This document shows positions 49 through 24,271 of a DNA stretch of 64,000 nt, piece after piece. The DNA is taken from positions 124,001 through 188,000 of IMG/VR virus record IMGVR_UViG_3300007735_000804. One strand, 5' to 3'. Positions within the stretch are counted from its first letter, which is position 1, and every line of letters begins with the position of its first letter. Under the pieces are notes generated by a model. The model ran no database searches. It was not told the DNA's origin and saw only the letters and a list, made by a program, of their open reading frames with translations. Made by a program: the position numbers and the translations under genes.

Positions 49-107
49 AGTATAAGGGGTCAGGTGGGGGGTTGGTGTCCCCCGTGTGCCAGATCAGCGA
101 CCGTCTG
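49..107 (-). promoter_or_regulatory. early promoter cassette (-10 TATACT + 22-bp palindromic element at 86-107)
   Basis: GTGCCAGAT-CAGC-GACCGTCTG 32 bp from the -10; ATG at 23 downstream. Confidence 0.7.
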
Positions 108-261
108 TGTAGTCTCCGATGATGATGCCAGTTGCGGCATCGCGGACCTGAGCGTACCCGTACTCCTCAGAGAGGTCCAGGCAGAGCAACCAGGCACGGT
201 CCTCATCGGTGGTGGTGTTCTCCCAGGGAGCGGAGGGGCAGATCACGTTGAGGCGGGTCAT
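94..261 (-). CDS. small hypothetical early protein (55 aa)
   Basis: ORF track 94..312 trimmed to ATG at 261, downstream of TGcTACAAT -10 at 285-290. Confidence 0.65.
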   Translation of the reverse strand: MTRLNVICPSAPWENTTTDEDRAWLLCLDLSEEYGYAQVRDAATGIIIGDYTDGR

Positions 262-308
262 GGTTGGTTGATTGAACTGAGAGTATTGTAGCAGGTCGGG
301 GGGAGGGG

Positions 309-485
309 TCAACCCTCCCCATCCTCTGGGGTCAGCGCCCAGACCACGCTCTCCAGAGGGGCAGCGTAGAAGTACTCCTCCCCGTTCTGGGTGACGCGCC
401 AGACCTGGCAGGTGGCGTTGGGCTCACGGGTGATACGCTCCACCCCGTAGGGTTGCAGCATCATGATGGCTTCGGAGATCAGCAT
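309..485 (-). CDS. small hypothetical early protein (58 aa)
   Basis: MLISEAIMM... start just downstream of the promoter at 509-514. Confidence 0.6.
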   Translation of the reverse strand: MLISEAIMMLQPYGVERITREPNATCQVWRVTQNGEEYFYAAPLESVVWALTPEDGEG

Positions 486-508
486 GGGTCGTTTGCTTTG
501 GTTCCCAT

Positions 509-568
509 AGTATAGAGGCAAAAGGGAGGGGGTGTGCCCCTCCGTTGTGCCATTATCAGAATTGGACC
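509..568 (-). promoter_or_regulatory. early promoter cassette with embedded terminator-like hairpin
   Basis: -10 TATACT 509-514; GGAGGGG/CCCCTCC hairpin 525-543; degenerate palindrome GTGCCATTA-TCAG-AATTGGACC 547-568. Confidence 0.6.
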
Positions 569-684
569 TCCTGCAGGGTCGGTTGGGGGGCAGCGTCCTC
601 AGCGGTGAGGGTCTCCAGGATCTGCAGGATCTGCTCTCCGTTGCGACCTTGACGGAGCAGGGAGAGGGCAAGGTTCAGGGTCAT
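556..684 (-). CDS. small hypothetical protein (42 aa)
   Basis: MTLNLALSLLRQGRNGEQILQILE...; fits the minus-strand gene tiling. Confidence 0.55.
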   Translation of the reverse strand: MTLNLALSLLRQGRNGEQILQILETLTAEDAAPQPTLQEVQF

Positions 685-719
685 GGTATGATGTCGGGTT
701 GGTTGGTAAGGGTCAGGGG

Positions 720-860
720 TCAGGGTGCCAGGTGGGCAGGCGACCCACAGGAGCGGTAGAAGGCGACCATGCGCTCCGCCTCCTCCAGGGTGCGGAACCA
801 TTGCGACCGCCACTCACAGGCATTGTAGGGGGTTTGGTAGCGAACTTCGTAGCGGATCAT
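720..860 (-). CDS. small hypothetical protein (46 aa)
   Basis: Read by hand: MIRYEVRYQTPYNACEWRSQWFRTLEEAERMVAFYRSCGSPAHLAP; -10 TGcTACAAT at 885-890. Confidence 0.65.
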   Translation of the reverse strand: MIRYEVRYQTPYNACEWRSQWFRTLEEAERMVAFYRSCGSPAHLAP

Positions 861-895
861 GGCGGGTCGGTTGGTTGCTTTGGTATTGTAGCAGG

Positions 896-1060
896 TCAGG
901 CAGCGATCAGCAGGTCGTCCTCCCAGCAGATGCGATCAGAGAACAGCAGGTCCGCGATTGCCTCCAGGTCCTGGCGGTCCTGATCTGCCTTCAGGATGGC
1001 AGCACGGCACTGGGCGGCAACTTCTTCCAGGGTGTACAGGGCGTTGCAGTTGTAGCGCAT
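896..1060 (-). CDS. small hypothetical protein (54 aa)
   Basis: Read by hand: MRYNCNALYTLEEVAAQCRAAILKAD...; downstream of the promoter at 1086. Confidence 0.6.
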   Translation of the reverse strand: MRYNCNALYTLEEVAAQCRAAILKADQDRQDLEAIADLLFSDRICWEDDLLIAA

Positions 1061-1085
1061 GAGGTCGTCCGTGGTTGACTTGTTC

Positions 1086-1144
1086 AGTATAAGGGGTCAG
1101 CGGGCAATCAGGTCGCCTGCAGTGTACAGTGCCTGGGCTGTCAC
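1086..1144 (-). promoter_or_regulatory. early promoter cassette
   Basis: -10 TATACT 1086-1091; TGTACAGTG-CCTG-GGCTGTCAC 1123-1144. Confidence 0.6.
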
Positions 1145-1264
1145 ATTACGGATGGGGCGAATCGGTTCCCATAGCAGGCAGAGCAGCACAGCAACAGCAG
1201 CAACGCGGAGCATGGTAGCACGGTGGAAGTCAGCAGAGCGGGAGCAGGTTAGGGATCGCATCAT
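1097..1264 (-). CDS. small hydrophobic hypothetical protein (55 aa)
   Basis: MMRSLTCSRSADFHRATMLRVAAVAVLLCLLWEP...; ATGA overlap with the upstream stop. Confidence 0.55.
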   Translation of the reverse strand: MMRSLTCSRSADFHRATMLRVAAVAVLLCLLWEPIRPIRNVTAQALYTAGDLIAR

Positions 1265-1602
1265 GCAAACACAAATCCATCGGAAAATTCGTATTCGTTG
1301 AACACAGGAGAAGTTCCTGCCTGTCCGACAAACTTATGAACAAACCACTTAAAGTTGCGCTGAAATACACATTCGCCCTTGATTCCAAACTCCTGAAGTA
1401 AAGCATTCAGGCGCGATTTGGTGGTCTTAGTTTGATACCCACCATCAAAGATTTCAAGGGAGGTATCATCAATCTTTGCAATCAGATTGCTGTGAAGGTA
1501 TACAAAACTCACACCTTCAATGGTGATAACTTCGGTATTGTCACACTTCCAATCGCGGTTATCACGAATGGCAGCGCACATTTCAGATTCGATCTTACGC
1601 AT
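1261..1602 (-). CDS. hypothetical early protein (MRKIESEMC...)
   Basis: ORF track; start trimmed to the ATG after the promoter at 1627. Confidence 0.75.
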   Translation of the reverse strand: MRKIESEMCAAIRDNRDWKCDNTEVITIEGVSFVYLHSNLIAKIDDTSLEIFDGGYQTKTTKSRLNALLQEFGIKGECVFQRNFKWFVHKFVGQAGTSPVFNEYEFSDGFVFA

Positions 1603-1626
1603 GAGGCGTCTCTCAGTGACAAACGT

Positions 1627-1685
1627 AGTATGGCATGGATCAGGGGTCAGCACAAGGGGGTGTGTGCCACCTGTTCAACTGGCAC
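1627..1685 (-). promoter_or_regulatory. early promoter cassette
   Basis: TGcCATACT -10; GTGCCACCT-GTTC-AACTGGCAC 1664-1685. Confidence 0.8.
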
Positions 1686-2571
1686 ACTTAAACCGTTGGT
1701 TGTTGAAGTTAGCGTTAGAAAAGACCTCACGATTCACCAGTTTGAACATACCAAACTCATTGGTCATGACATAACCCTCAGCATCAATTCTGTTGCCGTA
1801 GAGGTATGCTGCAGGACCATTGTTGCGGCAGAGGTATAAGCAATCATCCTTGATTGACTTCACCAATGCCCACAAACGCAGCAGGTTAGCATCACAATCA
1901 AAGTCGTCTGGGTTGATCTCTTCCCCAGCACGAATGCAGGCATTGATCTGTTGTTTGATCTTTGCCGCCTCTTTTACACTCACAAACTCACAGAGAGTTG
2001 CAATTTGACGGGCAAAGTCACAGACTTCTTTTACATCAGCAAACGATTCTTGCCCGTGCTGAATGTATGCTTGGGGTTGCACAAATTTCACGGTGTCAGT
2101 ATCATTCCAAACGGAACGATCAGGCATGGCAACAGCATCACGAAGATCGCTCGCAGCATAGTAACAAGTGTGCGGAGCGATGATGATACGTTGCTCTACT
2201 ACTTCAGGGAACTGATAGGTGATAGTGTTGGGGGTGTATTCAGTAGATCCACCAAACCCGATAAAGTCACCTTGATAAATGGTATTTGTAAAAGGTAGGC
2301 AATCAAAACAAGCGTGAAGAATTTCTGCAACCTGTCCCTGATGATTCTGATCGATTTCATCATGGGATTCGTTGATCTTGATTTTAACTTTGTTGAAGAC
2401 ACTTTTGGTGCCTACGAAGAAGTTACCAGTGGCAGGATTGCGACCCCAGACAATAGCGGGAGCACCATCAATCTTTACACTCAAGGTGCCACGGGCAGTA
2501 AACCAATCCAGAACAGAAAGATCACCCGTCAGGATGGTATCTTCGGGGTGTTCGAGGTGTGTGTTTTTCAT
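1675..2571 (-). CDS. DUF6267-like protein with ligase/covalent nucleotidyltransferase-type motifs
   Basis: HLEHPED N-terminus, KIDG (motif I KxDG), YQGD, EGYV, KLV. Confidence 0.65.
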   Translation of the reverse strand: MKNTHLEHPEDTILTGDLSVLDWFTARGTLSVKIDGAPAIVWGRNPATGNFFVGTKSVFNKVKIKINESHDEIDQNHQGQVAEILHACFDCLPFTNTIYQGDFIGFGGSTEYTPNTITYQFPEVVEQRIIIAPHTCYYAASDLRDAVAMPDRSVWNDTDTVKFVQPQAYIQHGQESFADVKEVCDFARQIATLCEFVSVKEAAKIKQQINACIRAGEEINPDDFDCDANLLRLWALVKSIKDDCLYLCRNNGPAAYLYGNRIDAEGYVMTNEFGMFKLVNREVFSNANFNNQRFKCAS

Positions 2572-2577
2572 GCTGTT

Positions 2578-2636
2578 AGTATGGCACGGAATCAGGGGAA
2601 TCACAAGGGGGTGTGTGCCAGTTCCTCAACTGTCAC
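2578..2636 (-). promoter_or_regulatory. early promoter cassette
   Basis: TGcCATACT -10; GTGCCAGTT-CCTC-AACTGTCAC 2615-2636. Confidence 0.8.
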
Positions 2637-2806
2637 TCCTCCAGCAGTTCAGGATAGTATTCTTCAACCTCTGCAATCAGTTCCTCATCACTATACCCAG
2701 AAAGATTTTCTTCAATCTGGTCACCAACAAGTCGCATCAGATCTTTGGTGCTCATGTTATCAAGGATGCGATCAATGTAAGCATCCAGAAGTTCTTGGCG
2801 GTTCAT
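2633..2806 (-). CDS. acidic hypothetical protein (57 aa)
   Basis: Read by hand: MNRQELLDAYIDRILDNMSTKDLMRLVG...EEYYPELLEE. Confidence 0.65.
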   Translation of the reverse strand: MNRQELLDAYIDRILDNMSTKDLMRLVGDQIEENLSGYSDEELIAEVEEYYPELLEE

Positions 2807-2808
2807 GA

Positions 2809-3078
2809 TCAGTTTGCGTAGAGTGGGAGTTTCTTACGGAGACGGATTGCGTCTTCTAATACATCACCAATCTGTTCGTAGATGTAGTCGCAACCTCCTA
2901 CATCACAGAGTACATCTTGAGTGAAAAGTGATGGGAAATACTCCTCTTGAGTCATCTCCTCATTATACTCAAACACATCATGTTGAGTGAATACAAATGC
3001 AGCACATCCTGCGTCCTCACCTTGACTCTCAATCAGTTGGTTGATAGTGTCACGAAGTTCGGAAAGTGTGCGGTACAT
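2809..3078 (-). CDS. hypothetical protein
   Basis: ORF track 89 aa; tiling. Confidence 0.65.
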   Translation of the reverse strand: MYRTLSELRDTINQLIESQGEDAGCAAFVFTQHDVFEYNEEMTQEEYFPSLFTQDVLCDVGGCDYIYEQIGDVLEDAIRLRKKLPLYAN

Positions 3079-3417
3079 AATCAGTTCAGGAGTTCAGTTA
3101 CAAAATTAAGAGTTATCTTTGTTCTTGCTGATAGTTGATGAAGTTTGTCATCATCAACATTTAGGACTACATTTTCACTCTTTGGTAGAAGTTCTTGAAA
3201 GGATTTGAGTGTAGTATAAATGTAATCCAGTTTTTCGGAATTAGTCATTCATCGTCTCCAAAGTTGTTAGTGAGGAAATCTTCAAGTTCGATGAGTTTGC
3301 TGTCACTCAAAGAGACAATGTACTCATCGACAATCATAGCGAGAAGGTCATGATCTTCCCTACATTTAGCATACAAGAACTCAAAGAGTTCTGTACCTGT
3401 AGAATAGCGAAGGTCAG

Positions 3418-3618
3418 TCATTTCAGAATGATACGATAATCAATGGATTTGACACACCAACCAGTAGCGGCGGTGATTTCTTCTACGAGGTCATCTTCAT
3501 CATCTGCTTCCCAAATTGTAGTACGAACATCGCAGATGAGATCTTCTTGCAAACCAGGAGAAAGTGGTTCACCATCAGACTCAAAATCAAACTCAATTTC
3601 AGTAACTTGGAATTGCAT
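3418..3618 (-). CDS. acidic hypothetical protein
   Basis: ORF track 66 aa, downstream of the promoter at 3653. Confidence 0.7.
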   Translation of the reverse strand: MQFQVTEIEFDFESDGEPLSPGLQEDLICDVRTTIWEADDEDDLVEEITAATGWCVKSIDYRIILK

Positions 3619-3652
3619 TACTTACGAAGAGGAGAATTGAAGTAACGAGTGA

Positions 3653-3710
3653 AGCATAGCACCAGGATGATGCCAGTGGAGATGACACCGACCAGTCCTA
3701 GAACTGTCAC
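3653..3710 (-). promoter_or_regulatory. early promoter cassette
   Basis: TGcTATGCT -10; CGACCAGTC-CTAG-AACTGTCAC 3689-3710. Confidence 0.6.
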
Positions 3711-3744
3711 AGCATCACCAGTGAACGAATAGGTTTCAATCATT

Positions 3745-3894
3745 TTAATAGGTCAGGAGTGCGGATACTTTATCATACAACTGGGAAACATCTACGCCCA
3801 GGATTTCACTACATTCCTCCCAATCTTCATGAAACTCGATGAGATCCAGCAGGGCACGAATCTCCGCTTGGTTTAGTTCAAGAACTTCTGCCAT
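3745..3894 (-). CDS. hypothetical protein (49 aa)
   Basis: MAEVLELNQAEIRALLDLIE... Confidence 0.55.
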   Translation of the reverse strand: MAEVLELNQAEIRALLDLIEFHEDWEECSEILGVDVSQLYDKVSALLTY

Positions 3895-3895
3895 T

Positions 3896-4015
3896 TCAGT
3901 AATCATAATCGGCGGCAAGATACTCATTCATGTTGAACTCTTCATCGTTCAACTCTGGGATATCAAAAATCTCACCAGGAGCATCTTGAATCTCTTGCCA
4001 AAGTTCATCAAACAT
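3896..4015 (-). CDS. very acidic mini-protein (39 aa)
   Basis: Read by hand: MFDELWQEIQDAPGEIFDIPELNDEEFNMNEYLAADYDY; first gene after the promoter at 4040. Confidence 0.6.
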   Translation of the reverse strand: MFDELWQEIQDAPGEIFDIPELNDEEFNMNEYLAADYDY

Positions 4016-4039
4016 GGTGTGTCTTTCAGGGACGAATGT

Positions 4040-4098
4040 AATGTATCAGGGGAGAGGGGGCAGATCAACCCCCCTTGTGCCACCTTCTCAACTGGCAC
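4040..4098 (-). promoter_or_regulatory. early promoter cassette
   Basis: TGaTACATT -10; GGGGG/CCCCC hairpin; GTGCCACCT-TCTC-AACTGGCAC 4077-4098. Confidence 0.8.
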
Positions 4099-4101
4099 AC
4101 A

Positions 4102-4260: not shown

Positions 4261-4283
4261 CGATCAATTGCGACGACTTGAGT

Positions 4284-4342
4284 AACATAACCCAGCACGT
4301 GGCAGAACGCAAGGGGGTGTGTGCCAGTTGATCAACCGTCCT
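4284..4342 (-). promoter_or_regulatory. early promoter cassette
   Basis: -10 TATGTT; GTGCCAGTT-GATC-AACCGTCCT 4321-4342. Confidence 0.65.
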
Positions 4343-4421
4343 CATTCTCAATAAGATCTTGTTATTGAGAATCAATAAGGACTAGTAATTGAGAATAAGA
4401 TCCAATATTTAAACTGGCACA

Positions 4422-4574: not shown

Positions 4575-4583
4575 AAGATCTAG

Positions 4584-4982: not shown

Positions 4983-5007
4983 CGCTAAACTCACAAGTCT
5001 TGGAAGC

Positions 5008-6886: not shown

Positions 6887-7150
6887 TCAGCAGGCACCAT
6901 AGAAAGGGTTACCAGTTTGAGGCAGATCCTGATTGTCACCCGTGATGATGTAATCATATGCCAGGCGCTCACGAATTGCAACTGCCTTCTCCACACGATT
7001 CAGAAACTTCTTGGAGATTTGGTCAATACCCTTCCAGGACAGAATTTGCATACACCATTCTTCTGAAATGTCACCATAAGGAGTGGCAACAGGATAGAAA
7101 CCAACCAGCATCGTGCCGTCTTTGGACTGGAGGGTAGGGAAGTCAGGCAT
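6887..7150 (-). CDS. hypothetical early protein
   Basis: MPDFPTLQSKDG..., directly after the promoter at 7175. Confidence 0.7.
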   Translation of the reverse strand: MPDFPTLQSKDGTMLVGFYPVATPYGDISEEWCMQILSWKGIDQISKKFLNRVEKAVAIRERLAYDYIITGDNQDLPQTGNPFYGAC

Positions 7151-7174
7151 TGGGTGTCTCTCGATTACCTTTGT

Positions 7175-7232
7175 ATTATAGGGCATCCAGAATGATCTGG
7201 AGTGCCCTGTGTGCCAGTTCCTCAAGTGGTCG
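7175..7232 (-). promoter_or_regulatory. early promoter cassette with long spacer hairpin
   Basis: TATAAT; GGGCA-TCCAGA/TCTGGA-G-TGCCC hairpin 7181-7207; GTGCCAGTT-CCTC-AAGTGGTCG 7211-7232. Confidence 0.8.
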
Positions 7233-7434
7233 GCATCACCAGTTCAGCAACACGATCTTCACCAGGAAGACCCTCAAGAAGATCATACATCCGTTGGAAC
7301 TTGACACCAAGATTCATATAGTATGCTGCAAGTTGAGGATCTTCCTTGATATGATAAGCAGCATCTTCATTCACCTCAAGACAAGCAATGATGTCCAGAA
7401 GTTCGCCAGAAGTGAAGGTGATGGGGTTTTTCAT
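7222..7434 (-). CDS. hypothetical early protein
   Basis: ORF track 70 aa after the promoter at 7458. Confidence 0.7.
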   Translation of the reverse strand: MKNPITFTSGELLDIIACLEVNEDAAYHIKEDPQLAAYYMNLGVKFQRMYDLLEGLPGEDRVAELVMPTT

Positions 7435-7457
7435 CGTGTTCCCTTGATTACCTCTGT

Positions 7458-7515
7458 ATTATAGGTCAGAAGGATGGCACCACATCGTTGCGTAGACCAG
7501 TTTCCGAACTGTCCA
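7458..7515 (-). promoter_or_regulatory. early promoter cassette
   Basis: TATAAT; AGACCAGTT-TCCG-AACTGTCCA 7494-7515. Confidence 0.75.
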
Positions 7516-7975: not shown

Positions 7976-8165
7976 TTGCAATTTGATTGAGAACGTTACG
8001 GGCAAAAGTCATAAAGGCATAGGGAGACACACCATTGTGCTCATAGAAGTCCAGCATATCAGATTGATTGTAAGTATTCACAATCAGCAAGCAGGCATCA
8101 TAGAGTGCTGCCTGGTGCTCTTCCTTGGATTGGAAAGAAACTGCACTGTAAGATGGTAGAGTCAC
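7968..8165 (-). CDS. hypothetical early protein
   Basis: ORF track, GTG start after the promoter at 8193. Confidence 0.65.
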   Translation of the reverse strand: MTLPSYSAVSFQSKEEHQAALYDACLLIVNTYNQSDMLDFYEHNGVSPYAFMTFARNVLNQIANG

Positions 8166-8192
8166 GGGTTCCGTTCCCTTGATTACCTTTGT

Positions 8193-8250
8193 ATTATACA
8201 GTCCTCATGAGGCGATTCGGGAAGTAATATGACACTTGCTCAACTGGCAC
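8193..8250 (-). promoter_or_regulatory. early promoter cassette
   Basis: TATAAT; ATGACACTT-GCTC-AACTGGCAC 8229-8250. Confidence 0.75.
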
Positions 8251-8729: not shown

Positions 8730-8787
8730 ATTATAGCGCAGAACAGAGGCGATTGCCAAAGAACTGTGCTACTTGTGGAACTGTCCA
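8730..8787 (-). promoter_or_regulatory. early promoter cassette
   Basis: TATAAT; GTGCTACTT-GTGG-AACTGTCCA 8766-8787. Confidence 0.75.
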
Positions 8788-9207: not shown

Positions 9208-9268
9208 TGACCCCAATGCAAAAACCAAATGAAAGAAGAAATGAAGATGAGTTTGTCAGTCTTGGTCA

Positions 9269-9637
9269 TTAGTTACAACCGAATGCGGCACCTCCTAAAA
9301 ATGCTCCAAGGGGAACAGACCATTTGTAACCATCACCACGACTCATACTAGCAGCAACACCACCGCCGAGTATACCACCTAAAAGGGTTTTTGTGGGATC
9401 ACAATAACTCCTTCGATTAGGTGAACTATTTCGATAATAGTTGCGTCCAGTGCTACCACAAGGTACATTGTATTTTTCAGTATTCACATATCCTTGTTGA
9501 TAGTTACCATACCGATCATAATATCCAGGCACATAAACCTCACGGGTCCTGGTGCATTCTTCATATTCAGTCACTTGTTGTGCAGAGACTGGTATTGAAA
9601 AGAAAGTAAGTGGTAAGAGAAGAAGTAATTGTTTCAT
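9269..9637 (-). CDS. secreted protein with C-terminal glycine zipper
   Basis: Signal peptide MKQLLLLLPLTFFSIPVSA; LLGGILGGGVAA...PLGAFLGGAAFG. Confidence 0.7.
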   Translation of the reverse strand: MKQLLLLLPLTFFSIPVSAQQVTEYEECTRTREVYVPGYYDRYGNYQQGYVNTEKYNVPCGSTGRNYYRNSSPNRRSYCDPTKTLLGGILGGGVAASMSRGDGYKWSVPLGAFLGGAAFGCN

Positions 9638-9640
9638 TGT

Positions 9641-9865
9641 TCAGCGAGCAGTAATGTTCAGAGTCTCCATCAGCATCATAGCAAGTTCGATCTGATTATC
9701 TTCATCAACCAGAGGAATGTTGGCATCTACAAACTCACTTGAAAGTTCCTGCAAGAGATCGGTCATTCGCGGATCGGCATACACAAAGTCAGCAAACTCA
9801 TCCTTAAAACCATCACGCAGCAGTTTGAGAGACTTGGTAACAGTCAGTTGTTTGGTGGTGTCCAT
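9641..9865 (-). CDS. hypothetical early protein
   Basis: MDTTKQLTVTKSL..., after the promoter at 9890. Confidence 0.7.
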   Translation of the reverse strand: MDTTKQLTVTKSLKLLRDGFKDEFADFVYADPRMTDLLQELSSEFVDANIPLVDEDNQIELAMMLMETLNITAR

Positions 9866-9889
9866 GGCGGGTGTGTTGAACATGATGTT

Positions 9890-9947
9890 ATTATAGGGCA
9901 TCTGGGGGTATTTAAGCGCCCCCATGTGCCAGTTGTTGAAGTGGACT
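9890..9947 (-). promoter_or_regulatory. early promoter cassette
   Basis: TATAAT; GGGGG/CCCCC hairpin; GTGCCAGTT-GTTG-AAGTGGACT 9926-9947. Confidence 0.75.
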
Positions 9948-10401
9948 AGCGAGCGTACAAGTAACCACCTGCCCAATCAGCATTTTCAAGCAACCATTCA
10001 CGCTGCTCAATGATACGCAGGTCGTATCGAACACCTTTGGCAGGTGCTTTCCAAGATGCAGACTTATAGACTTCACCAGTCTTCTTATCTACAAAAGCGT
10101 GGACACTGCGGGAACCATTAGCACTCATAATGATCTTGTGATATTTGCGACCCGTTTCAGGGTAGAACTCATAACCACAATTGCCGTTCTTCAGGTCAGC
10201 AATACATGCCTTATGATACTTAATACCAGTTTCGGTATTACCTTCCAGACGCTCTAGAGAACGCTGGTGCATCTTAATGCTGCGCTGGATAAAGTTCTGA
10301 CGCAGTGCCTCACAGAGGGCATAGGTGTGCCCCAAAACTGCCTCTGCGATGTTTTTCCGTGCCTCTGCTTGGGCGGAGTAGTCAGCGAAGGTGGTGGTCA
10401 T
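9946..10401 (-). CDS. conserved phage protein (GRKYHKI...SVHAFVD.KTG.VYKSASWKAPAK)
   Basis: Motif recalled from myophage hypothetical proteins; start after the promoter at 10423. Confidence 0.75.
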   Translation of the reverse strand: MTTTFADYSAQAEARKNIAEAVLGHTYALCEALRQNFIQRSIKMHQRSLERLEGNTETGIKYHKACIADLKNGNCGYEFYPETGRKYHKIIMSANGSRSVHAFVDKKTGEVYKSASWKAPAKGVRYDLRIIEQREWLLENADWAGGYLYAR

Positions 10402-10422
10402 TGGTTTGTTGCGTATGAACGT

Positions 10423-10481
10423 ATTATAGCGGCACCTAGGCACCGCTGGGAGGGTCAGTATGCCAGTTCAGAATCTGGCAC
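10423..10481 (-). promoter_or_regulatory. early promoter cassette
   Basis: TATAAT; ATGCCAGTT-CAGA-ATCTGGCAC 10460-10481. Confidence 0.75.
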
Positions 10482-11024: not shown

Positions 11025-11047
11025 GGGGGCGTCTGTCGATTACTTTG

Positions 11048-11824
11048 TTAGTATAATACCTTCAGCAGCGGATTCTGGTGGTCTTGTGCCACCTCTTCAA
11101 CTGGCACAGCATTGAGGCGCTGTTGAGCAGTCAAAAAGTATTCTTCCTCACGCTCAATACCGATAAAGTTTCTATTTTCTAATTTAGATGCAATTCCAGT
11201 GGTGCCAGCACCCATACATGGGTCAAGCACCAGATCGCCCTCATTCGAGAATGTTCTAATCAACCAGCGATAAAGATCAACGGGTTTCTGTGTAGGATGG
11301 TGCTTACCTTCACCCTCCGCAGTCTTAAAATAGATAACGCTGCGAGGATACCTCAACCCACTGTCATTCTTAACATGAACTGCCTTTGTTTGCACACCAT
11401 ATGCTTCAGTGTCTCTTACAGCAGTTCCCTTATCATAAGGAGTTCCTTGTGTCATTTGAGGATTATATGTGGGTTGTTTCTTATAAAACACCACAATATC
11501 TTCATGAGCACGAAGAGGTTGCTTTTTGGCATTCAGATAACCTGTTGCTTTTGATTTCTCCCACACCATTGTGTACTTGAAGTCTTTATAATTTGAAGCA
11601 ATCAGAACACTTGTAAATGGTTGTGCTGCTGTTGAAATGATGGGGCAAGTTGGTTTACAAATATAATCCACAAGTTCCCAAAATCGCGGGTAATCAATGA
11701 TTGTGTCCCATTCATTTCTTTTATTCAGAGTTCCATAAGGAAAATCTGTCAATAACAAATCAATGCTCTGGGATGCAAGATTACCCAGAACATCAAACAT
11801 ATCTCTATTGTATAACTGACTCAT
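11048..11824 (-). CDS. N6-adenine/N4-cytosine DNA methyltransferase, beta class
   Basis: Motif IV LLTDFPY, HPTQKP, motif I LDPCMGAGTTG, GIERE; ATGA coupling to the upstream gene. Confidence 0.9.
   Translation of the reverse strand: MSQLYNRDMFDVLGNLASQSIDLLLTDFPYGTLNKRNEWDTIIDYPRFWELVDYICKPTCPIISTAAQPFTSVLIASNYKDFKYTMVWEKSKATGYLNAKKQPLRAHEDIVVFYKKQPTYNPQMTQGTPYDKGTAVRDTEAYGVQTKAVHVKNDSGLRYPRSVIYFKTAEGEGKHHPTQKPVDLYRWLIRTFSNEGDLVLDPCMGAGTTGIASKLENRNFIGIEREEEYFLTAQQRLNAVPVEEVAQDHQNPLLKVLY
11050..11107 (-). promoter_or_regulatory. early promoter cassette
   Basis: TATACT; GTGCCACCT-CTTC-AACTGGCAC 11086-11107. Confidence 0.8.
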
Positions 11825-12422: not shown

Positions 12423-12480
12423 ACTATAGGGTAAAATGAGGAAGAACAGGGAATAAAGTGGTCAGTTGTCACACTGTCAC
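12423..12480 (-). promoter_or_regulatory. early promoter cassette driving the nuclease-MTase pair
   Basis: TATAGT; TGGTCAGTT-GTCA-CACTGTCAC 12459-12480. Confidence 0.65.
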
Positions 12481-20400: not shown

Positions 20401-20657
20401 TCTACAATCAAACAATAACGACACTGGAAAGCAAAAGCATCCTTTTCGTGAGTAAATTTCTCCCCATTTAGTTCCCAAGAATACAGAACTTCAATCCAAG
20501 GCTTTGTGTCTCCATAAGAATTGAGACCTTCAACAGTCACAAAACCTTTGGAACCATCTGCCCGTGCCCAACGAGAACCAATTTGGATTTCGTGTGCCTT
20601 AAAGAAATGACGAACGATTGCTTTGCGTCCGTCTATGATTTCAGTTTCGTAGTCCAT
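20397..20657 (-). CDS. hypothetical early protein
   Basis: ORF track; after the promoter at 20680. Confidence 0.7.
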   Translation of the reverse strand: MDYETEIIDGRKAIVRHFFKAHEIQIGSRWARADGSKGFVTVEGLNSYGDTKPWIEVLYSWELNGEKFTHEKDAFAFQCRYCLIVE

Positions 20658-20679
20658 CGGTTTGGTTGCTTATGAGAGT

Positions 20680-20738
20680 ATCATACCAAAAAGGGCACCT
20701 GAAATCAAGTGCCCTTGTTCCAGTTTGAGAAGTGTCCT
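20680..20738 (-). promoter_or_regulatory. early promoter cassette with embedded terminator
   Basis: TGgTATGAT; AAGGGCAC/GTGCCCTT hairpin followed by a T run; GTTCCAGTT-TGAG-AAGTGTCCT 20717-20738. Confidence 0.75.
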
Positions 20739-20937
20739 AGAGAACTTCCCACTCCGTTTCCCAGTGACAATCGTTGCTTACATTCACCCAAAAGAAGTAT
20801 TTCTGGTTCTCTGATGCGAGAAACAGCATACCATCACCCTTATCCTGCTCAACAATACAGACAGGATTTCCTCCCATCATGTTAGCAAGACGATTCTTTG
20901 CTTTACTGCTCTTCGGTTTTACAGTCACTCTTCGCAT
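20737..20937 (-). CDS. hypothetical protein (VKPKSSKAKNRLANMM)
   Basis: ORF track 66 aa. Confidence 0.7.
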   Translation of the reverse strand: MRRVTVKPKSSKAKNRLANMMGGNPVCIVEQDKGDGMLFLASENQKYFFWVNVSNDCHWETEWEVL

Positions 20938-21329
20938 TGTTCTTCCTCATCAGACAAGACAGTTCCCATAGGACCTTTTTTAAGACGTGCCCACTCTTCT
21001 TCTGCCTGTTGCATATCATCAAACTTCTTCCTCAGGTCTTCACCCAAAGTCAGGTCAAACTCATCAGCAACCTTACGCATATCTTCTTCTTTGCGGTGTT
21101 CACCGAATGCGAGACCACAAGCACCTTTCATAATGTTGATGTCATCGTGACCCATTGCACGGGCAACGGTTGCGAAAAAGTTAAACAGTTGATAAGTGTT
21201 AAGGTCTTCAGCAGGAATTTCAAAAGTATAATGCTCTTCGGGGAGCATCATATCATCAAAACCACTGCTGTAATGGGTGGAGGTCCATTCAGTATCAAAA
21301 GAGACTTTGAGGCGAGCTTTGTAGGTCAT
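20925..21329 (-). CDS. hypothetical early protein
   Basis: ORF track trimmed to MTYKARLK after the promoter at 21351. Confidence 0.7.
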   Translation of the reverse strand: MTYKARLKVSFDTEWTSTHYSSGFDDMMLPEEHYTFEIPAEDLNTYQLFNFFATVARAMGHDDINIMKGACGLAFGEHRKEEDMRKVADEFDLTLGEDLRKKFDDMQQAEEEWARLKKGPMGTVLSDEEEQCEE

Positions 21330-21350
21330 TGGTCTGTTGTGTATGAATGT

Positions 21351-21408
21351 ATTATAGAGTATCAGGAGTCTTCTGTGGAGTCTGCTGTGCCAGTTCGTCA
21401 AGTGTCCT
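21351..21408 (-). promoter_or_regulatory. early promoter cassette
   Basis: TATAAT; GTGCCAGTT-CGTC-AAGTGTCCT 21387-21408. Confidence 0.75.
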
Positions 21409-21760
21409 CGTCGGGCAGTTCTTCATTCAAATCTACATCAATTCCATCAGTGAGTTCTTTCATTCGTTCAAAGAAATCTTCATCTAATGGAATCAGTTTC
21501 TCTTCTCCACGTTCAATACGATCACACATTTCCATCAGATACTCAAGAAACTCTTTTGGATAAGTTTCATCTAGGTTGATAGAAGTCCAGAACCATTGAT
21601 AACACTCTTTGTAAGGATCGTCATCTGATAGTAGAGCATAATTCTCATAGTTTCCACTGATGAGATCTCTCCACATCTTAAAGTTATTCCAGATCTCTCT
21701 CCAACCAGTTTGGAAGCAGTGACCGATGTAATACTCAAACCAGTTCATCTTTTTGGACAT
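21398..21760 (-). CDS. hypothetical protein
   Basis: ORF track trimmed to MSKKMNWF. Confidence 0.65.
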   Translation of the reverse strand: MSKKMNWFEYYIGHCFQTGWREIWNNFKMWRDLISGNYENYALLSDDDPYKECYQWFWTSINLDETYPKEFLEYLMEMCDRIERGEEKLIPLDEDFFERMKELTDGIDVDLNEELPDEDT

Positions 21761-22016
21761 AGAACAATTCATCCCGCCAGTTACGACCAGCAATATCAAA
21801 ACTAAATCCTAACTTACCAAGAGTGAATAGAAATGAGAACAATCTACCATATCCCATACAGATTTGTAGATAAGGCCATTCTATCCAGTTACCATATTCA
21901 CCAATATCAAATTCAACTTGAAGAAGTGAATATCGTTCTGTAAGAAATAGTGCTAGGTAAAACTCTTTACCATAATCTTCTCTGATACCCCATTTTGCGA
22001 CTTGAAACAGTTTCAT
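21735..22016 (-). CDS. hypothetical protein
   Basis: ORF track 93 aa. Confidence 0.65.
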   Translation of the reverse strand: MKLFQVAKWGIREDYGKEFYLALFLTERYSLLQVEFDIGEYGNWIEWPYLQICMGYGRLFSFLFTLGKLGFSFDIAGRNWRDELFYVQKDELV

Positions 22017-22195
22017 ACCATTTTCCTCTTATCAGTATCAAAGATTGTCCATTTTGCTATTTTAAGGCACATTAGCAGAGTTTGGTGTTCACGCTGATAC
22101 AAGTTCCAGTCACCTTTACATTTAGCAGCGTGTCTTCTACGATAGGCACAAGTCCATACGTTCTTGTATATTTGTGCCTTTTCGGTAAGTGTCAT
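22013..22195 (-). CDS. hypothetical protein
   Basis: ORF track 60 aa. Confidence 0.6.
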   Translation of the reverse strand: MTLTEKAQIYKNVWTCAYRRRHAAKCKGDWNLYQREHQTLLMCLKIAKWTIFDTDKRKMV

Positions 22196-22425
22196 TTATT
22201 TTTAAACTCTTCTTGAAGTTCTTTGGCAATTTTATATGCTCTTCTCCACATCAAATATTTTACCACTGGATTTGTTGGATTGTGAAGTATCCACCATTTA
22301 GTCTTCTCATATTGAACTCTTGCCAGTTGAGTCAGCATATAGAATGCCCTCGCTACGGATTGATCGGTAACAATCAAATACCCAACACAAAAGAATATAA
22401 TAAAGTAAATGTATGAAGCACTCAT
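22192..22425 (-). CDS. membrane-anchored hypothetical protein
   Basis: N-terminal hydrophobic helix; HPxNP motif. Confidence 0.65.
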   Translation of the reverse strand: MSASYIYFIIFFCVGYLIVTDQSVARAFYMLTQLARVQYEKTKWWILHNPTNPVVKYLMWRRAYKIAKELQEEFKNK

Positions 22426-22618
22426 TTTGTATCTTTTTTCACAACTACTGGGCAAGTAGGAATTGATTTTTGTATCTCTTCAATTATTTCGTTTTTAATT
22501 TGTCTAGGTAAACCCTCTTTTGCTTCAATACGATTAATAACGCTAACAGCCTGACTGCAGGTAATAATCGTCGTAAGAAATAGAGCAGTCATAGCTCTCT
22601 CCTATGCTTGAAGAATAT

Positions 22619-22846
22619 TTATAGAAACTTTTCTAAAGTTGCAGTATTCTTTTTAGATATCTTAATCTGTTTTTTAATGTAAGAAAGTGCAGTATCATAG
22701 GTATTGGCAGTATGCACTTGTTGTCCGTTATGAATGATTATAAACTTTTTATCATACGGAACTGCTGCCCATATACCATCTTTGGTCACATAACCATTTG
22801 GATCTCCTGGTTTAGGATTCAGGAGACCTTCATTTTGAATGTTCAT
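22619..22846 (-). CDS. hypothetical protein (GYVTKDG.WAAVP)
   Basis: ORF track. Confidence 0.65.
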   Translation of the reverse strand: MNIQNEGLLNPKPGDPNGYVTKDGIWAAVPYDKKFIIIHNGQQVHTANTYDTALSYIKKQIKISKKNTATLEKFL

Positions 22847-22983
22847 CGGGCAGCGCAAACATTTACAATACGTCCGTTAGGATTGCGAGCAAGCACAACG
22901 TCTTGTGCTTCACGGGGACTGTTAGCATGAACCTGTTCGCTTAAGCGACGGTTACCAGCGACGTAGATAACTTCGTATTTCAT
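22843..22983 (-). CDS. small hypothetical protein (A...ALARNP-type)
   Basis: MKYEVIYVAG...ARNPNGRIVNV; TTGTCA-17-TATAAT promoter 23006-23034. Confidence 0.65.
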   Translation of the reverse strand: MKYEVIYVAGNRRLSEQVHANSPREAQDVVLARNPNGRIVNVCAAR

Positions 22984-23020
22984 AGCGAGAGTTGAGAACG
23001 TGAGTATTATAGCAGAAAAG

Positions 23021-24202
23021 TCAGCGCCTGACAACGCTGATAGCAGGTAAACCCTGCTGAAACACGGTGTCTACGACCGCCTGAACGCTCTTGGCGGTGC
23101 TGACCCCCACCTTATCATAGACAGGCACACAGACCAGTCCAAAGGTCTTCTGGGCGCCTCCCAGACGGATCACGCGACCGATGCTCTGAGAGATACCGAT
23201 GTAGTCCATGTTCCGCATGAACAGAACTGCTTCCAGACCAGACACATTGATGCCCTCGGACAGAATGCTGTGATGAAGAACCACAAACTTTTTGGAGGAG
23301 TCTTTGCCCCAAGCATTGAGAGTGTCAAAGAATACCTCACGGTTGACCTTTTGACCGTCAATCACAGCACCAGTCTTGGAAGTGATATACATCCAAGAAT
23401 AACCACGCTCTTTGAGGTCAGAGCAGAAGTCAGACTGTGAAATCAGATTGATGATCTGTTTGGTAGAACGAGCGCAGATTAGGATCTTATCCAGACCGTT
23501 ATCGTCAATGGTCTCCAGCAGGTTAGCAGAGTCACGATCAGCAATCATCTGCTTGTCCTGAACCATCTCAAGTTGCTTGACCACAACTTTAGGGGGCAAA
23601 ATGTAACCTTGCTCCACCAGTTCAGGAGCAGGAACATTACAAATGACGTTGCCGTAGACCTCTGGCATATTCATACCAGGTTTAGAAATGGTTGCAGAAT
23701 GCTTTGGAGTCGCAGTGAAGAAATAGCAGCGGTCAGCAGCAGAAGCGAAGTGCTCCGTAGCAGGGAAAAAGTTACGTTGGACTGAATTGTGTGCTTCATC
23801 GAAGTAAATGGTATCAACGTGAATATCTGCCTGCTGCAGACGTTGCAGGGAGTTGTAGGTAGTGAAGATCAGTTGATGTTTGTAGGCACGACGAGACCAG
23901 TTGTGAATCTCACTGGGTTTCGTGGTGCTCTGGTGATGAGTCTCACCGCTGTGAACGTGCAGCACAGCAACGTTGGTGATAAACTCAAGGTACTCGGCAG
24001 ACAACTGCTCCGCCAGGAGGATGCGAGGTGCCACCACTACGATGGTTTTAGGAGCATCAGACTGGAACTCACGCAGAGCATCAAAGATCATCGTAGGGGT
24101 CTTGCCCGCACCAGTCGGCATGATCAGCTGACCTAGTTGATGCTGTTCCATAGCATCAAGACCACGCTGCTGGTGGGGACGAAGTTCGAACACAGGTCTC
24201 AT
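23021..24202 (-). CDS. superfamily 2 (ResIII/DEAH-like) helicase
   Basis: Q motif LRPHQ, Walker A PTGAGKT, DEAH, TAT, EGINV, QSIGRVIR. Confidence 0.9.
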   Translation of the reverse strand: MRPVFELRPHQQRGLDAMEQHQLGQLIMPTGAGKTPTMIFDALREFQSDAPKTIVVVAPRILLAEQLSAEYLEFITNVAVLHVHSGETHHQSTTKPSEIHNWSRRAYKHQLIFTTYNSLQRLQQADIHVDTIYFDEAHNSVQRNFFPATEHFASAADRCYFFTATPKHSATISKPGMNMPEVYGNVICNVPAPELVEQGYILPPKVVVKQLEMVQDKQMIADRDSANLLETIDDNGLDKILICARSTKQIINLISQSDFCSDLKERGYSWMYITSKTGAVIDGQKVNREVFFDTLNAWGKDSSKKFVVLHHSILSEGINVSGLEAVLFMRNMDYIGISQSIGRVIRLGGAQKTFGLVCVPVYDKVGVSTAKSVQAVVDTVFQQGLPAISVVRR

Positions 24203-24215
24203 TGCGTATGAAACT

Positions 24216-24271
24216 ATTATAGCAGAAAACCGCCCCTAGTGCGACCCAGTGGACGGTTCTTAAAGTGGCTT
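24216..24271 (-). promoter_or_regulatory. early promoter cassette (degenerate)
   Basis: TGcTATAAT; TGGACGGTT-CTTA-AAGTGGCTT 24250-24271 (29 bp offset). Confidence 0.55.

Follow-up and report, generated by a model that had tools for sequence, protein, structure and literature searches.

How does a T4-like cyanophage switch on its host-takeover genes when their promoters carry no recognizable -35 element? We addressed this question in the window, a 64,000-nucleotide stretch at positions 124,001 to 188,000 of the IMG/VR record IMGVR_UViG_3300007735_000804, which represents a new, uncultured and probably freshwater-type phage. The original prediction described at least 19 early promoters between positions 49 and 24,271 that share a 22-bp palindrome at a fixed position, and inferred that a dimeric activator, either a host factor or an injected phage protein, switches on the whole region. 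We found that the observation holds, whereas the interpretation is supported only in part. The half-sites of the palindrome are the same as those of the host element CGRE1, which is bound by the cyanobacterial regulator PlmA (PMM1637) to activate yfr2 genes, and the phage therefore probably borrows this host activator to start infection.

A palindrome at a fixed distance from the -10 box

All 19 predicted coordinates hold a copy of the palindrome, read on the minus strand. The consensus as originally written matches only 6 sites within 3 mismatches, against 0.04 expected, because one half is often degenerate. We therefore scored each copy with a leave-one-out position weight matrix (PWM). Thirteen sites scored 15-29 bits and the site at 3689 scored 12.5 bits, giving 14 statistically solid copies, whilst the five copies at 86, 547, 1123, 12459 and 24250 are degenerate, at 6-11 bits. 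Genome-wide, 23 positions score at or above 12 bits, against 1.7 in shuffled sequence. The count of "at least 19" omits five copies elsewhere in the genome. The promoters, with their leave-one-out scores, are as follows.

49-107, minus strand: promoter 1, degenerate palindrome at 86-107 (the proximal half CTGGCAC is kept; 9.0 bits), 31-bp spacer with a G5/C6 hairpin, -10 TATACT at 49-54.
509-568, minus strand: promoter 2, degenerate palindrome at 547-568 (7.6 bits), 32-bp spacer with a GC hairpin, -10 TATACT at 509-514.
1086-1144, minus strand: promoter 3, very degenerate palindrome at 1123-1144 (6.0 bits), 31-bp spacer, -10 TATACT at 1086-1091.
1627-1685, minus strand: promoter 4, strong palindrome at 1664-1685 (24.5 bits), 31-bp spacer, -10 CATACT; the stop codon of the upstream DUF6267 gene lies inside the motif and the gene downstream is Kyano_Gp96.
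2578-2636, minus strand: promoter 5, the best palindrome in the window, at 2615-2636 (29.3 bits), 31-bp spacer, -10 CATACT; upstream of the DUF6267 gene.
3653-3710, minus strand: promoter 6, palindrome at 3689-3710 with a weak proximal half (12.5 bits), 30-bp spacer, -10 TATGCT.
4040-4098, minus strand: promoter 7, strong palindrome at 4077-4098 (23.9 bits), 31-bp spacer with a G6/C5 hairpin, -10 TACATT.
4284-4342, minus strand: promoter 8, palindrome at 4321-4342 (22.6 bits), 31-bp spacer, -10 TATGTT.
7175-7232, minus strand: promoter 9, palindrome at 7211-7232 (19.9 bits), 30-bp spacer holding an 11-bp hairpin (-17.5 kcal/mol), -10 TATAAT.
7458-7515, minus strand: promoter 10, palindrome at 7494-7515 (15.0 bits), wholly inside the upstream ORF, 30-bp spacer, -10 TATAAT.
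8193-8250, minus strand: promoter 11, palindrome at 8229-8250 (22.3 bits), inside the upstream ORF, 30-bp spacer, -10 TATAAT.
8730-8787, minus strand: promoter 12, palindrome at 8766-8787 (16.8 bits), inside the upstream ORF, 30-bp spacer, -10 TATAAT.
9890-9947, minus strand: promoter 13, palindrome at 9926-9947 (22.1 bits), 30-bp spacer with a G5/C5 hairpin, -10 TATAAT.
10423-10481, minus strand: promoter 14, palindrome at 10460-10481 (16.7 bits), 31-bp spacer, -10 TATAAT; upstream of the DUF7717 gene.
11050-11107, minus strand: promoter 15, strong palindrome at 11086-11107 (25.2 bits), inside the 3' end of the N6/N4 DNA methylase gene, 30-bp spacer, -10 TATACT.
12423-12480, minus strand: promoter 16, degenerate palindrome at 12459-12480 (10.5 bits), 30-bp spacer, -10 TATAGT.
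20680-20738, minus strand: promoter 17, palindrome at 20717-20738 (17.5 bits), 31-bp spacer that is a canonical hairpin plus T-run terminator (-17.6 kcal/mol), -10 TATGAT.
21351-21408, minus strand: promoter 18, palindrome at 21387-21408 (24.5 bits), 30-bp spacer without a hairpin, -10 TATAAT.
24216-24271, minus strand: promoter 19, degenerate palindrome at 24250-24271 (10.9 bits), 28-bp spacer, -10 TATAAT; upstream of the UvsW-like helicase gene at 23021-24202.
22174-22195, minus strand: a possible twentieth copy, weak and not originally listed (11.5 + 5.8 bits), with -10-like TATCGT 29 bp below.

Each of the 19 copies has a -10-like hexamer 28-32 bp below the 22-mer: 30 bp at nine sites, 31 bp at eight, 32 bp at 547 and 28 bp at 24250. 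This equals the predicted 31-32 bp from the proximal edge to the first T in 17 of 19 copies. As predicted, none has TTGACA at the -35 position, although 1664, 2615, 4077, 4321 and 20717 have TTGnnn there. The downstream start codon lies about 57-63 bp below the motif. The stop codon of the upstream ORF lies inside the motif at six sites, and the whole motif lies inside the upstream ORF at six others. The reading frames are mixed (0, 1 and 2), indicating that this is not a peptide motif, in agreement with the prediction of a DNA-level element. No composite site lies between 24.3 and 64 kb, as originally stated. However, the stretch from 12.5 to 20.7 kb has no copy either, and it was not shown that one factor switches on the whole region.

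To define the architecture more broadly, we examined related loci. Around 362 motif sites in 120 IMG/VR loci, TAnnnT occurs 200 times at offset 30 and 108 times at offset 31, against a background of about 12. A pooled logo of 454 promoters gives a 24-bp palindrome, no information in the spacer, TATAAT, and a purine 7 nt after the hexamer. Thus, the motif belongs to the promoter, since its spacing to the -10 box is fixed while the 30-bp spacer carries no sequence information. At the variable pair 7/16 of the palindrome the counts are G-C 197, C-G 23, G-G 102 and C-C 99, such that Watson-Crick pairs number 220 against 250 expected (p = 0.0014). The two halves do not co-vary, indicating a protein site and not a hairpin.

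Conservation among cyanomyoviruses

A search of related cyanomyoviruses had been suggested as a check on the motif, and it revealed that the element is not special to this phage. The same palindrome, TGTG(C/A)CA(G/C)TT-N4-AA(C/G)TG(G/T)CACA, occurs with the same spacing in Syn9, S-PM2, P-HM1, P-SSM2, S-SRM01 and dozens of IMG/VR contigs. Counts of the pattern versus the same pattern reversed were 16 vs 2 in S-PM2, 15 vs 1 in P-HM1, 28 vs 3 in S-SRM01, 18 vs 1 in P-SSM2 and 9 vs 0 in Syn9, but 1 vs 2 in T4, from which the element is absent. We interpret this as conservation in cyanomyoviruses only. The 24-mer and the spacing persist across genera whose DNA no longer aligns.

The original prediction left undecided whether this is the non-T4 early element of Syn9. 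Syn9 has 10 composite sites, against 0.3 in shuffled sequence, with the same palindrome, 30 bp and -10 architecture; six lie within its gp55-gp93 small-gene block. As at promoter 19, Syn9 has a composite site upstream of its own helicase gene. The palindrome is most likely the "novel early regulatory element" reported for T4-like cyanophages (Syn9 and P-TIM40; Doron et al. 2016, ISME J 10:1437). That element reportedly lies upstream of small genes of unknown function, is not a T4-type early promoter and is conserved across cyanomyovirus genomes and metagenomes. The assignment rests on this description and on our Syn9 scan, without a comparison of the two logos or of the mechanism proposed there. 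The link to CGRE1/PlmA described below appears in none of the papers that we examined.

Host genomes, which had likewise been named as a place to look for the motif, show no regulon of the palindrome. The 121 genomes searched hold 0-2 copies each, below the reversed control, and a complete Prochlorococcus genome matches the shuffled expectation at nearly every threshold.

Half-sites shared with the host element CGRE1

The palindrome consists of two inverted copies of one 10-bp half-site, H (TGTGNCAGTT), separated by 4 bp. Each half-site is identical to a half-site of CGRE1 (AACTGTCACA|TGTGACAGTT), the element in picocyanobacterial yfr2 promoters. CGRE1 has been described as a 21-22-nt palindrome located 55-57 nt upstream of yfr2 transcription start sites (Lambrecht et al. 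2018, PMC6191309). In that study, the cyanobacteria-specific GntR regulator PMM1637/PlmA was pulled down on the element and shifted it in EMSA, and the promoters were activated in a reporter, whilst the R50A mutant was inactive.

In a complete Prochlorococcus genome, the yfr2 (RF01701) promoters and one further site read AACTGTCACATGTGACAGT(T/A). Of 31 yfr2-type promoters from picocyanobacteria, 16 carry H with the same variants that the phage uses (GTGACAGTT, GTGCCAGTT, AGGACAGTT). The distance from the end of H to the start of the -10 box is 43-44 bp in 9 of 12 host promoters, and 43 bp (232 promoters) or 44 bp (122) in the phage set. The distal phage half-site has the same orientation and the same distance to the -10 box as the promoter-proximal half of CGRE1. 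Both elements are about 22 bp in total length, their promoters lack a recognizable -35 element, and CGRE1 works upstream of -40 as an activator site.

The order of the half-sites is, however, swapped. CGRE1 is rcH|H with the dyad at CAC|GTG and no spacer, whereas the phage element is H-N4-rcH, which places the dyad about 12 bp closer to the promoter in the phage (about -53.5 against about -65.5). The two arrangements are almost mutually exclusive, with 285 phage-type copies in IMG/VR loci against 0-14 of the CGRE1 type. The phage has roughly 20 or more copies per genome, while the host has two to four.

We also searched for a phage-borne regulator of this family. No GntR domain was found in this phage, and no PlmA homolog was found in this phage, Syn9, S-PM2, S-SRM01 or P-SSM2. 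By contrast, the PlmA-like gene is single-copy in 56 of 61 genomes of the host family, and its wHTH domain is invariant at 68 of 78 residues.

Proposed mechanism

Taken together, we interpret these sequences as host-RNA-polymerase promoters of the small-gene (host-takeover) region, each consisting of a -10 box only plus an upstream protein-binding palindrome at about -64 to -43 (center about -53.5). We propose that pre-existing host PlmA dimers bind the phage palindromes as soon as the DNA enters the cell and recruit RNA polymerase to promoters that lack a -35 element. Because the PlmA DNA-binding domain is nearly invariant among picocyanobacteria, one promoter design would work in every host. 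Our analysis demonstrates the sequence, its spacing, its conservation and the identity of the half-sites; binding and activation of CGRE1 by PMM1637 are taken from the published work; that PlmA binds the phage arrangement, that the effect is activation rather than repression, and that the promoters are early, are inferences. Neither binding nor timing was assayed, there are no expression data or mapped transcription start sites for this phage, and the metatranscriptome contigs that we examined gave no 5' ends. The dimeric activator of the original prediction now has a concrete host candidate, and we estimate the probability of this reading at roughly 0.55.

Several findings speak against it. 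A rigid C2 dimer could not bind both half-site arrangements, so flexible DNA-binding domains or two dimers must be assumed. PMM1637 did not shift its own promoter or alter its activity (PMC6191309), yet in the HL Prochlorococcus genome that we examined this gene is preceded by a phage-type palindrome, although that site is imperfect and the extent of the published fragment is not known to us. The yfr5 promoter, with only one good half-site, was not shifted in the same study. Induction of yfr2 by PMM1637 is conditional (nitrogen starvation, high light), so PlmA may not be constitutively active. PlmA is also scarce, with about 200 dimers per cell quoted for S. elongatus (PMC7344720).

Alternative explanations

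A less likely possibility is that the palindrome is bound by a phage protein, carried in the virion or made very early, that evolved to read host-like half-sites in a phage-specific arrangement, which would keep phage promoters separate from the host PlmA regulon. The H-N4-rcH arrangement is essentially phage-specific, host genomes show no regulon of it and PMM1637 did not bind its own promoter. T4 sets a precedent by injecting a protein (Alt) that favors early promoters. However, beyond the absence of a GntR domain in this phage and of PlmA homologs in this phage and four named relatives, Pfam scans of the 20 larger ORFs of the region found no clear DNA-binding domain, the only hint being a sub-threshold PrlF-like hit at 21398-21772. 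The agreement with PlmA-activated host promoters in half-site, orientation and 43-44 bp distance would then be coincidence or mimicry without a purpose.

It is more doubtful that the palindrome is an operator for shutting off or tuning early promoters. In this view, the -10-only promoters would be constitutively recognized, and PlmA or a phage protein bound at -64 to -43 would modulate them when infection moves to the middle phase. Picocyanobacterial promoters generally need only a -10 box, and host-like promoters reportedly drive the middle genes (Doron et al. 2016). The conserved phage-type palindrome upstream of host plmA overlaps the -35 region, a typical repressor position. On the other hand, a position upstream of -42 does not occlude RNA polymerase, PMM1637 activates from the equivalent position in yfr2 promoters, and tandem arrays of two to six palindromes upstream of promoters in one locus, L077, look like enhancer-type recruitment.

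Least likely is that the repeats are mobile cassettes resembling PeSLs (promoter-early stem-loops), conserved by descent and recombination or as a DNA/RNA hairpin rather than through recognition by a specific protein, since the spacer sequences are unrelated between copies yet fixed in length, the halves do not co-vary, and the 24-mer and spacing outlast alignable DNA. A cassette role is compatible with the PlmA reading as a second role, not as a replacement for it.

Related promoter systems

PeSL cassettes are described in T4-type phages (Arbiol et al. 2010, PMC2839356; Comeau et al. 2014, PMC4122927) as repeated composite cassettes between small ORFs of hyperplastic regions, with GC-rich stem-loops placed inside the promoter, some of them true terminators. 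The region studied here is likewise a block of small ORFs of unknown function. Of the spacers, 26% fold at -8 kcal/mol or below, against 2% of shuffled spacers, and 13% carry a T-run. Three families of near-identical 5' leaders follow the -10 boxes, and contigs of related phages skip 7154-7446 and 9254-9948, from one cassette to the next. PeSLs, however, carry strong -35 and -10 boxes and an AT-rich upstream region; here the -35 and the AT-rich region are absent and a sequence-specific palindrome takes the upstream position.

NtcA-activated (class II) cyanobacterial promoters, also predicted in cyanophages (Sullivan et al. 2010, PMC3037559), are similarly -10-only promoters that depend on a dimeric host activator bound to an upstream palindrome, with the phage exploiting a host regulator. 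The NtcA site is GTA-N8-TAC centered at -41.5, whereas the motif described here differs in sequence and length and is centered at about -53.5.

The palindrome promoters in the phage genome

The virus record is 213,274 bp long, of which the window covers bases 124,001-188,000, and is rated complete by CheckV. It is a T4-like cyanomyovirus that encodes psbA, and only short stretches of it align to named phages (S-SRM01, S-PM2, S-SKS1 and ACG-2014f). The psbA gene did not serve as a guide to the host, since it is too conserved, with about 85% identity to cyanobacteria of every order. Window 1-24.3 kb is a one-directional, minus-strand block of about 85 small ORFs, in which the recognisable genes are Kyano_Gp96, DUF6267, DUF7717, an N6/N4 DNA methylase and a UvsW-like helicase. 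In content the block corresponds to the gp55-gp93 block of Syn9, which lies next to the baseplate genes.

To establish whether the 19 palindromes of the original prediction are real, we re-examined each position. All 19 sites are present and read on the minus strand, and the observation is therefore confirmed. The strict consensus proposed for them is matched within three mismatches at only six sites, against 0.04 expected. A leave-one-out PWM gives 15-29 bits for thirteen sites, 12.5 bits for one and 6-11 bits for five. A motif search of the full genome had been suggested in advance as a check, and it returned 23 positions at or above 12 bits against 1.7 in shuffles, and 15 at or above 18 bits against 0.1. 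All 19 sites have a -10-like hexamer 28-32 bp below the 22-mer, and 17 have it at 30-31 bp. Start codons follow about 57-63 bp below the motif, which predicts leaders of 15-21 nt. Twelve copies overlap the 3' end of the upstream ORF or lie wholly inside it, in all three reading frames, and a peptide motif was rejected on this basis. As originally stated, no copy lies in window 24.3-64 kb. Five more copies lie elsewhere in the genome, outside the window:

Genome 68067, a copy with the standard spacing and a terminator in the spacer.
Genome 71058, a copy with the standard spacing and a terminator in the spacer.
Genome 30556-30577, 36191-36212 and 72096-72117, three copies that directly abut a canonical TTGACx-N17-TAnnnT promoter at its -35 box, with 24-25 bp from motif to -10, which puts them about 6 bp closer to the -10 box than the standard class.

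Anatomy of the promoter class

To obtain a larger sample, we scanned the IMG/VR collection with a pattern of 14 specified bases, which returned 120 loci, 46 of them with three or more copies. Around 362 motif positions, TAnnnT occurs 66, 200, 108 and 36 times at offsets 29-32, against a background of about 12. We then pooled 454 unique promoters from the phage genome, Syn9 and these loci. The element is a 24-bp palindrome, TGTG(C/A)CA(G/C)TT-N4-AA(C/G)TG(G/T)CACA. The 30-bp spacer carries no sequence information (IC at most 0.35 bit per position), so there is no -35 element. The -10 box is TATAAT followed by A, and a purine lies 7 nt after the hexamer and is followed by a T. With that purine as +1, the palindrome spans about -65 to -42 and is centred about -53.5. 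An exact composite pattern proved too strict for database scans, giving 6 hits in the phage's own genome and 0 in Syn9.

We next asked whether the palindrome acts as a protein site or as a structure. At the variable mirror positions the two halves do not compensate. Pair 7/16 shows G-C 197, C-G 23, G-G 102 and C-C 99, and Watson-Crick pairs are fewer than independence predicts (220 against 250, p = 0.0014), with the same trend at pairs 0/23, 2/21 and 10/13. A weak half therefore tends to be paired with a strong half, which is the behaviour of a dimeric protein site, and an RNA or DNA hairpin or cruciform was rejected. One IMG/VR contig (L077, IMGVR_UViG_3300031784_003461) carries, at 150-2900, tandem arrays of two to six palindromes at a 57-58-bp period upstream of single small genes, in which only the last copy of each array has the standard distance to a -10 box. 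This again looks like a protein-binding site. We are highly confident that the palindrome is an upstream protein-binding element of a conserved cyanomyovirus promoter class.

The spacer is GC-rich (0.49 against 0.40 downstream) and enriched in hairpins: 26% of spacers fold at -8 kcal/mol or below, against 2% of shuffled ones, and 13% carry a T-run. Terminators of the upstream genes are therefore often tucked between the palindrome and the -10 box, as in the PeSL cassettes of T4-type phages. However, stable GC-rich stem-loops are present in only a minority of promoters, so this feature of PeSL cassettes is neither clearly shared nor clearly lacking. The strong sigma-70-type -35 and -10 boxes with an AT-rich upstream region that characterise PeSL cassettes were not found, as only the -10 box is present. 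Evidence on recombination between cassettes, which in PeSL creates indels of the flanked ORFs, likewise points in neither direction. Contigs of phages 90-95% identical, from a freshwater metatranscriptome, skip window 7154-7446 and 9254-9948, each skip running from one promoter/leader cassette to the next. These look like gene-cassette indels of the PeSL kind, but the two joints rest on short anchors of 27-32 nt.

Comparison with other promoter types gave no match. The NtcA/CRP-type class II promoter, GTA-N8-TAC (or TGTGA-N6-TCACA) centred at -41.5, differs in both logo and position. For the sigma-54 promoter (TGGCAC-N5-TTGC at -24/-12), TGGCAC is part of the half-site, but TTGC, where present, lies 8 nt away and a TATAAT box follows at 30 bp; moreover, cyanobacteria lack sigma-54. 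LexA, HrcA/CIRCE, RpaB/HLR1, SufR and IHF sites were compared with the logo only, and none of these, nor the sigma-54, NtcA and CRP sites, fits in sequence or spacing; none was tested further.

Distribution among phages

Related cyanomyoviruses and the early motif of Syn9 had both been named beforehand as points of comparison. We compared a degenerate pattern (three or fewer mismatches) with the same pattern reversed.

Table. Copies of the degenerate palindrome pattern and of the reversed control in phage genomes.
S-PM2: pattern 16, reversed control 2
P-HM1: pattern 15, reversed control 1
S-SRM01 (freshwater): pattern 28, reversed control 3
P-SSM2: pattern 18, reversed control 1
T4: pattern 1, reversed control 2
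Syn9 (a shorter pattern, one mismatch or fewer): pattern 9, reversed control 0

A composite scan of Syn9 found 10 promoters against 0.3 in shuffles. Six lie at 44.7-53 kb within the gp55-gp93 block, including one upstream of the helicase gene, as in this window. Doron et al. 2016 state that a novel regulatory element controls early-gene transcription in Syn9 and P-TIM40, and that it is abundant and conserved among T4-like cyanophages. The palindrome agrees with this description, being present upstream of the small-gene cluster of Syn9, the phage in which the element was defined, and abundant and conserved among T4-like cyanophage genomes and metagenomes. A direct comparison with the published logo was not made, and none of the papers found quotes it. 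We judge it likely that their element is this palindrome, and on that basis the feature described here is a further example of an element already reported rather than a new type. Whether the promoters lie upstream of start sites of early-class genes was not measured for this phage: there is no infection transcriptome, and the two runs that contain the stretch are metatranscriptomes with relatives 90-95% identical, which give no 5' ends. The original interpretation, that a dimeric activator, either a host factor or an injected phage protein, switches on the whole host-takeover region, is partly supported, and is sharpened below to a named host candidate.

The palindrome in host genomes

A scan of host genomes had likewise been proposed as a test, and it revealed no regulon. 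In five freshwater Synechococcus/Cyanobium genomes and 121 genomes of the same family, the palindrome (two or fewer mismatches) occurs 0-2 times per genome, which is fewer than the reversed control. In the larger (Synechococcus/Cyanobium-size) genomes among the 121, it is several-fold rarer than the same pattern read backwards (typically 0-1 against 5-10), which may be avoidance or only a dinucleotide or codon bias. A complete Prochlorococcus genome (G072, 1,674,013 bp) has exactly the shuffled expectation at nearly every PWM threshold. Recurrent host hits proved to be coding sequence of a LysR (rbcR-like) gene, or a terminator hairpin of variable sequence upstream of a DUF3136 gene in three Prochlorococcus genomes. 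The latter is not conserved in 30 orthologous loci, and the phage has no DUF3136. The palindrome as such is therefore not a common host operator. The sites in the Prochlorococcus genome G072 that are discussed here are:

C1:1231006-1231029, the best phage-type hit (21.7 bits), 35 nt upstream of the start of a 328-aa GntR-family regulator.
C1:61119-61142, the second-best phage-type hit (18.7 bits), about 90 nt upstream of an ORF with a signal-peptide-like N-terminus.
C1:1085349-1085368, a perfect copy of the host element CGRE1 (AACTGTCACATGTGACAGTT) at a place where RF01701 reported no yfr2 gene, which is at odds with the published statement that CGRE1 occurs only at yfr2 genes, unless a diverged yfr2 copy lies there.

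The GntR-family gene is single-copy, with matches in 56 of 61 genomes of the family, nearly all at 65-92% identity, and belongs to the PlmA subfamily. In Prochlorococcus MED4 the protein is PMM1637. Its wHTH domain is invariant at 68 of 78 residues across genomes with 33-66% GC, which would explain why one phage element serves all hosts.

Relationship to the host element CGRE1

Lambrecht et al. 2018 (PMC6191309) showed by pull-down and EMSA that PMM1637 binds CGRE1, a 21-22-nt palindrome 55-57 nt upstream of the yfr2 sRNA start sites, and that the R50A mutant was inactive. PMM1637 raised yfr2 and yfr4 promoter activity in a reporter. A search with GTTA-N3-GTGTACAC-N3-TAAC, reconstructed from the wording of the paper, found nothing. 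We therefore located yfr2 in G072 with RF01701 and read the promoters directly. CGRE1 is AACTGTCACA followed immediately by TGTGACAGT(T/A). These are the same two 10-bp half-sites as in the phage palindrome, in swapped order and without a spacer. The CGRE1 half-site (AACTGTCAC / GTGACAGTT) thus agrees with the pooled phage half-site TGTG(C/A)CA(G/C)TT, and host yfr2 promoters carry TGTGACAGTT, TGTGCCAGTT and TAGGACAGTT. Among 31 yfr2-type promoters from picocyanobacteria, 16 carry the half-site H (TGTGNCAGTT) with the very variants the phage uses.

The distance from the end of H to the -10 box is 43-44 bp in 9 of 12 measurable host promoters. In the 454 phage promoters it is 43 bp (232), 44 bp (122), 42 bp (69) or 45 bp (31). 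The distal half of the phage palindrome thus occupies exactly the place and orientation of the promoter-proximal half of CGRE1. This agreement in position holds for the shared half-site only, as the phage dyad as a whole lies about 12 bp closer to the promoter. The ten bases after H+N4 in host yfr2 promoters (nAGCGGCCYn) also score far above background with the phage proximal-half matrix (-6.4 against -22.2), although these sequences are related and the p-value is inflated.

In contrast to the half-site, the CGRE1 arrangement, with the dyad between CAC and GTG flanked by GTT(G/A)...CAAC, is not that of the phage, which is H-N4-rcH. The two arrangements are nearly exclusive. IMG/VR loci hold 285 phage-type copies against 0 HL-type and 14 LL-type CGRE1 copies (two or fewer mismatches), and the host genome has two perfect CGRE1 copies. 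At 68056-68088 of the phage genome, outside the window, three half-sites lie in a row, forming a CGRE1-type pair and a phage-type pair that share the central TGTGACAGTT. A search for phage-borne proteins of this family found no GntR domain in this phage, and no PlmA homologue in this phage, Syn9, S-PM2, S-SRM01 or P-SSM2.

PMM1637 did not bind or regulate its own promoter in vitro (PMC6191309). Yet a degenerate phage-type palindrome plus a lone CGRE1 half-site are conserved upstream of plmA in about 25 of 30 genomes. This upstream region (G072 C1:1231006-1231029 and the 30 host loci L351-L380), conserved from Prochlorococcus to Synechococcus, reads: half-site AACTG(G/T)CACA, 8 nt, (A/G)(T/G)GACA-N10-TTGTCAC in the phage-type arrangement, 16 nt, TAAGGT, then a conserved leader GTGGCCACATTGCAACCTGGCC. 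Since the published EMSA found no autoregulation, the factor that binds here has not been identified. Neither the two CGRE1 papers nor a 2020 PipX/PlmA review mentions phages, and no paper linking phage promoters to PlmA was found in the literature we searched, which was bounded, so that an earlier report of the link is not excluded.

Proposed mechanism

Taken together, the sequence analysis establishes -10-only promoters with a conserved, non-co-varying palindrome at a fixed distance, built from CGRE1 half-sites, one of which is positioned as in PlmA-activated host promoters. That PlmA/PMM1637 binds CGRE1 and activates, that PlmA is universal in cyanobacteria and restricted to them, and that it docks to PII-PipX are taken from the literature. 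From these we infer that resident PlmA binds the phage palindromes on DNA entry and recruits RNA polymerase. In this view, the second half-site has been moved from the upstream to the downstream side of H, bringing the dyad about 12 bp, or one turn, closer to the polymerase in a phage-specific "inside-out" palindrome. This may make the phage sites stronger or independent of the host's signal, a step that is speculation. We put the probability that the factor is PlmA at about 0.5-0.55. A rigid symmetric dimer cannot read both arrangements, yfr2 induction is conditional on stress, and PlmA is not abundant. Binding and activation at the phage sites were not assayed here, and the published data cover yfr2 and yfr4 only. 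If PlmA is not the factor, the strict phage-specific arrangement of host-like half-sites still needs an explanation.

T4-like cyanophages kill a large share of the picocyanobacteria of the ocean and of lakes, yet they lack the tools of T4 for taking over host transcription (Alt, ModA/B, MotA, AsiA). How they get their first genes read has therefore been open since the Syn9 transcriptome showed a non-T4 early element. The analysis turns this into a question within reach of existing reagents, namely the purified PMM1637 protein, its R50A mutant, the EMSA and the E. coli GFP reporter of Lambrecht et al. 2018. If cyanomyoviruses do start infection by hijacking PlmA, this would name the unknown factor behind the cyanophage early regulatory element, and would give PlmA, whose regulon is described as unknown, a second class of targets. 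Early phage transcription would depend on a regulator wired to the PII-PipX nitrogen/energy signalling hub, which would connect the nutrient and light status of the host to the first minutes of infection and to infection success. It would also explain why one promoter design works across Prochlorococcus, marine Synechococcus and freshwater Synechococcus, and would point to a simple host resistance route and a phage counter-route.

Local sequence context in the small-gene region

Further features of the window accompany the promoters:

Window 1-2600, with G+C of 55% against 33-43% in the rest of the window, holds Kyano_Gp96, DUF6267 and the three most degenerate palindromes, each with a G/C-run hairpin in the spacer.
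Window 4321-4420, where a second, weaker palindrome at 4399-4420 lies 78 bp from the one at 4321, with inverted copies of CTTATTGAGAAT between them.
Window 7150-7180, 7430-7463, 8165-8198 and 11025-11055, and also 10400-10428, 20660-20685, 21330-21356 and 24203-24221, where the -10 boxes are followed by three families of near-identical 5' leaders of unknown purpose (for example ACAAAGGTAATCGAGAGAC and ATTCATACGCAACAAACC).
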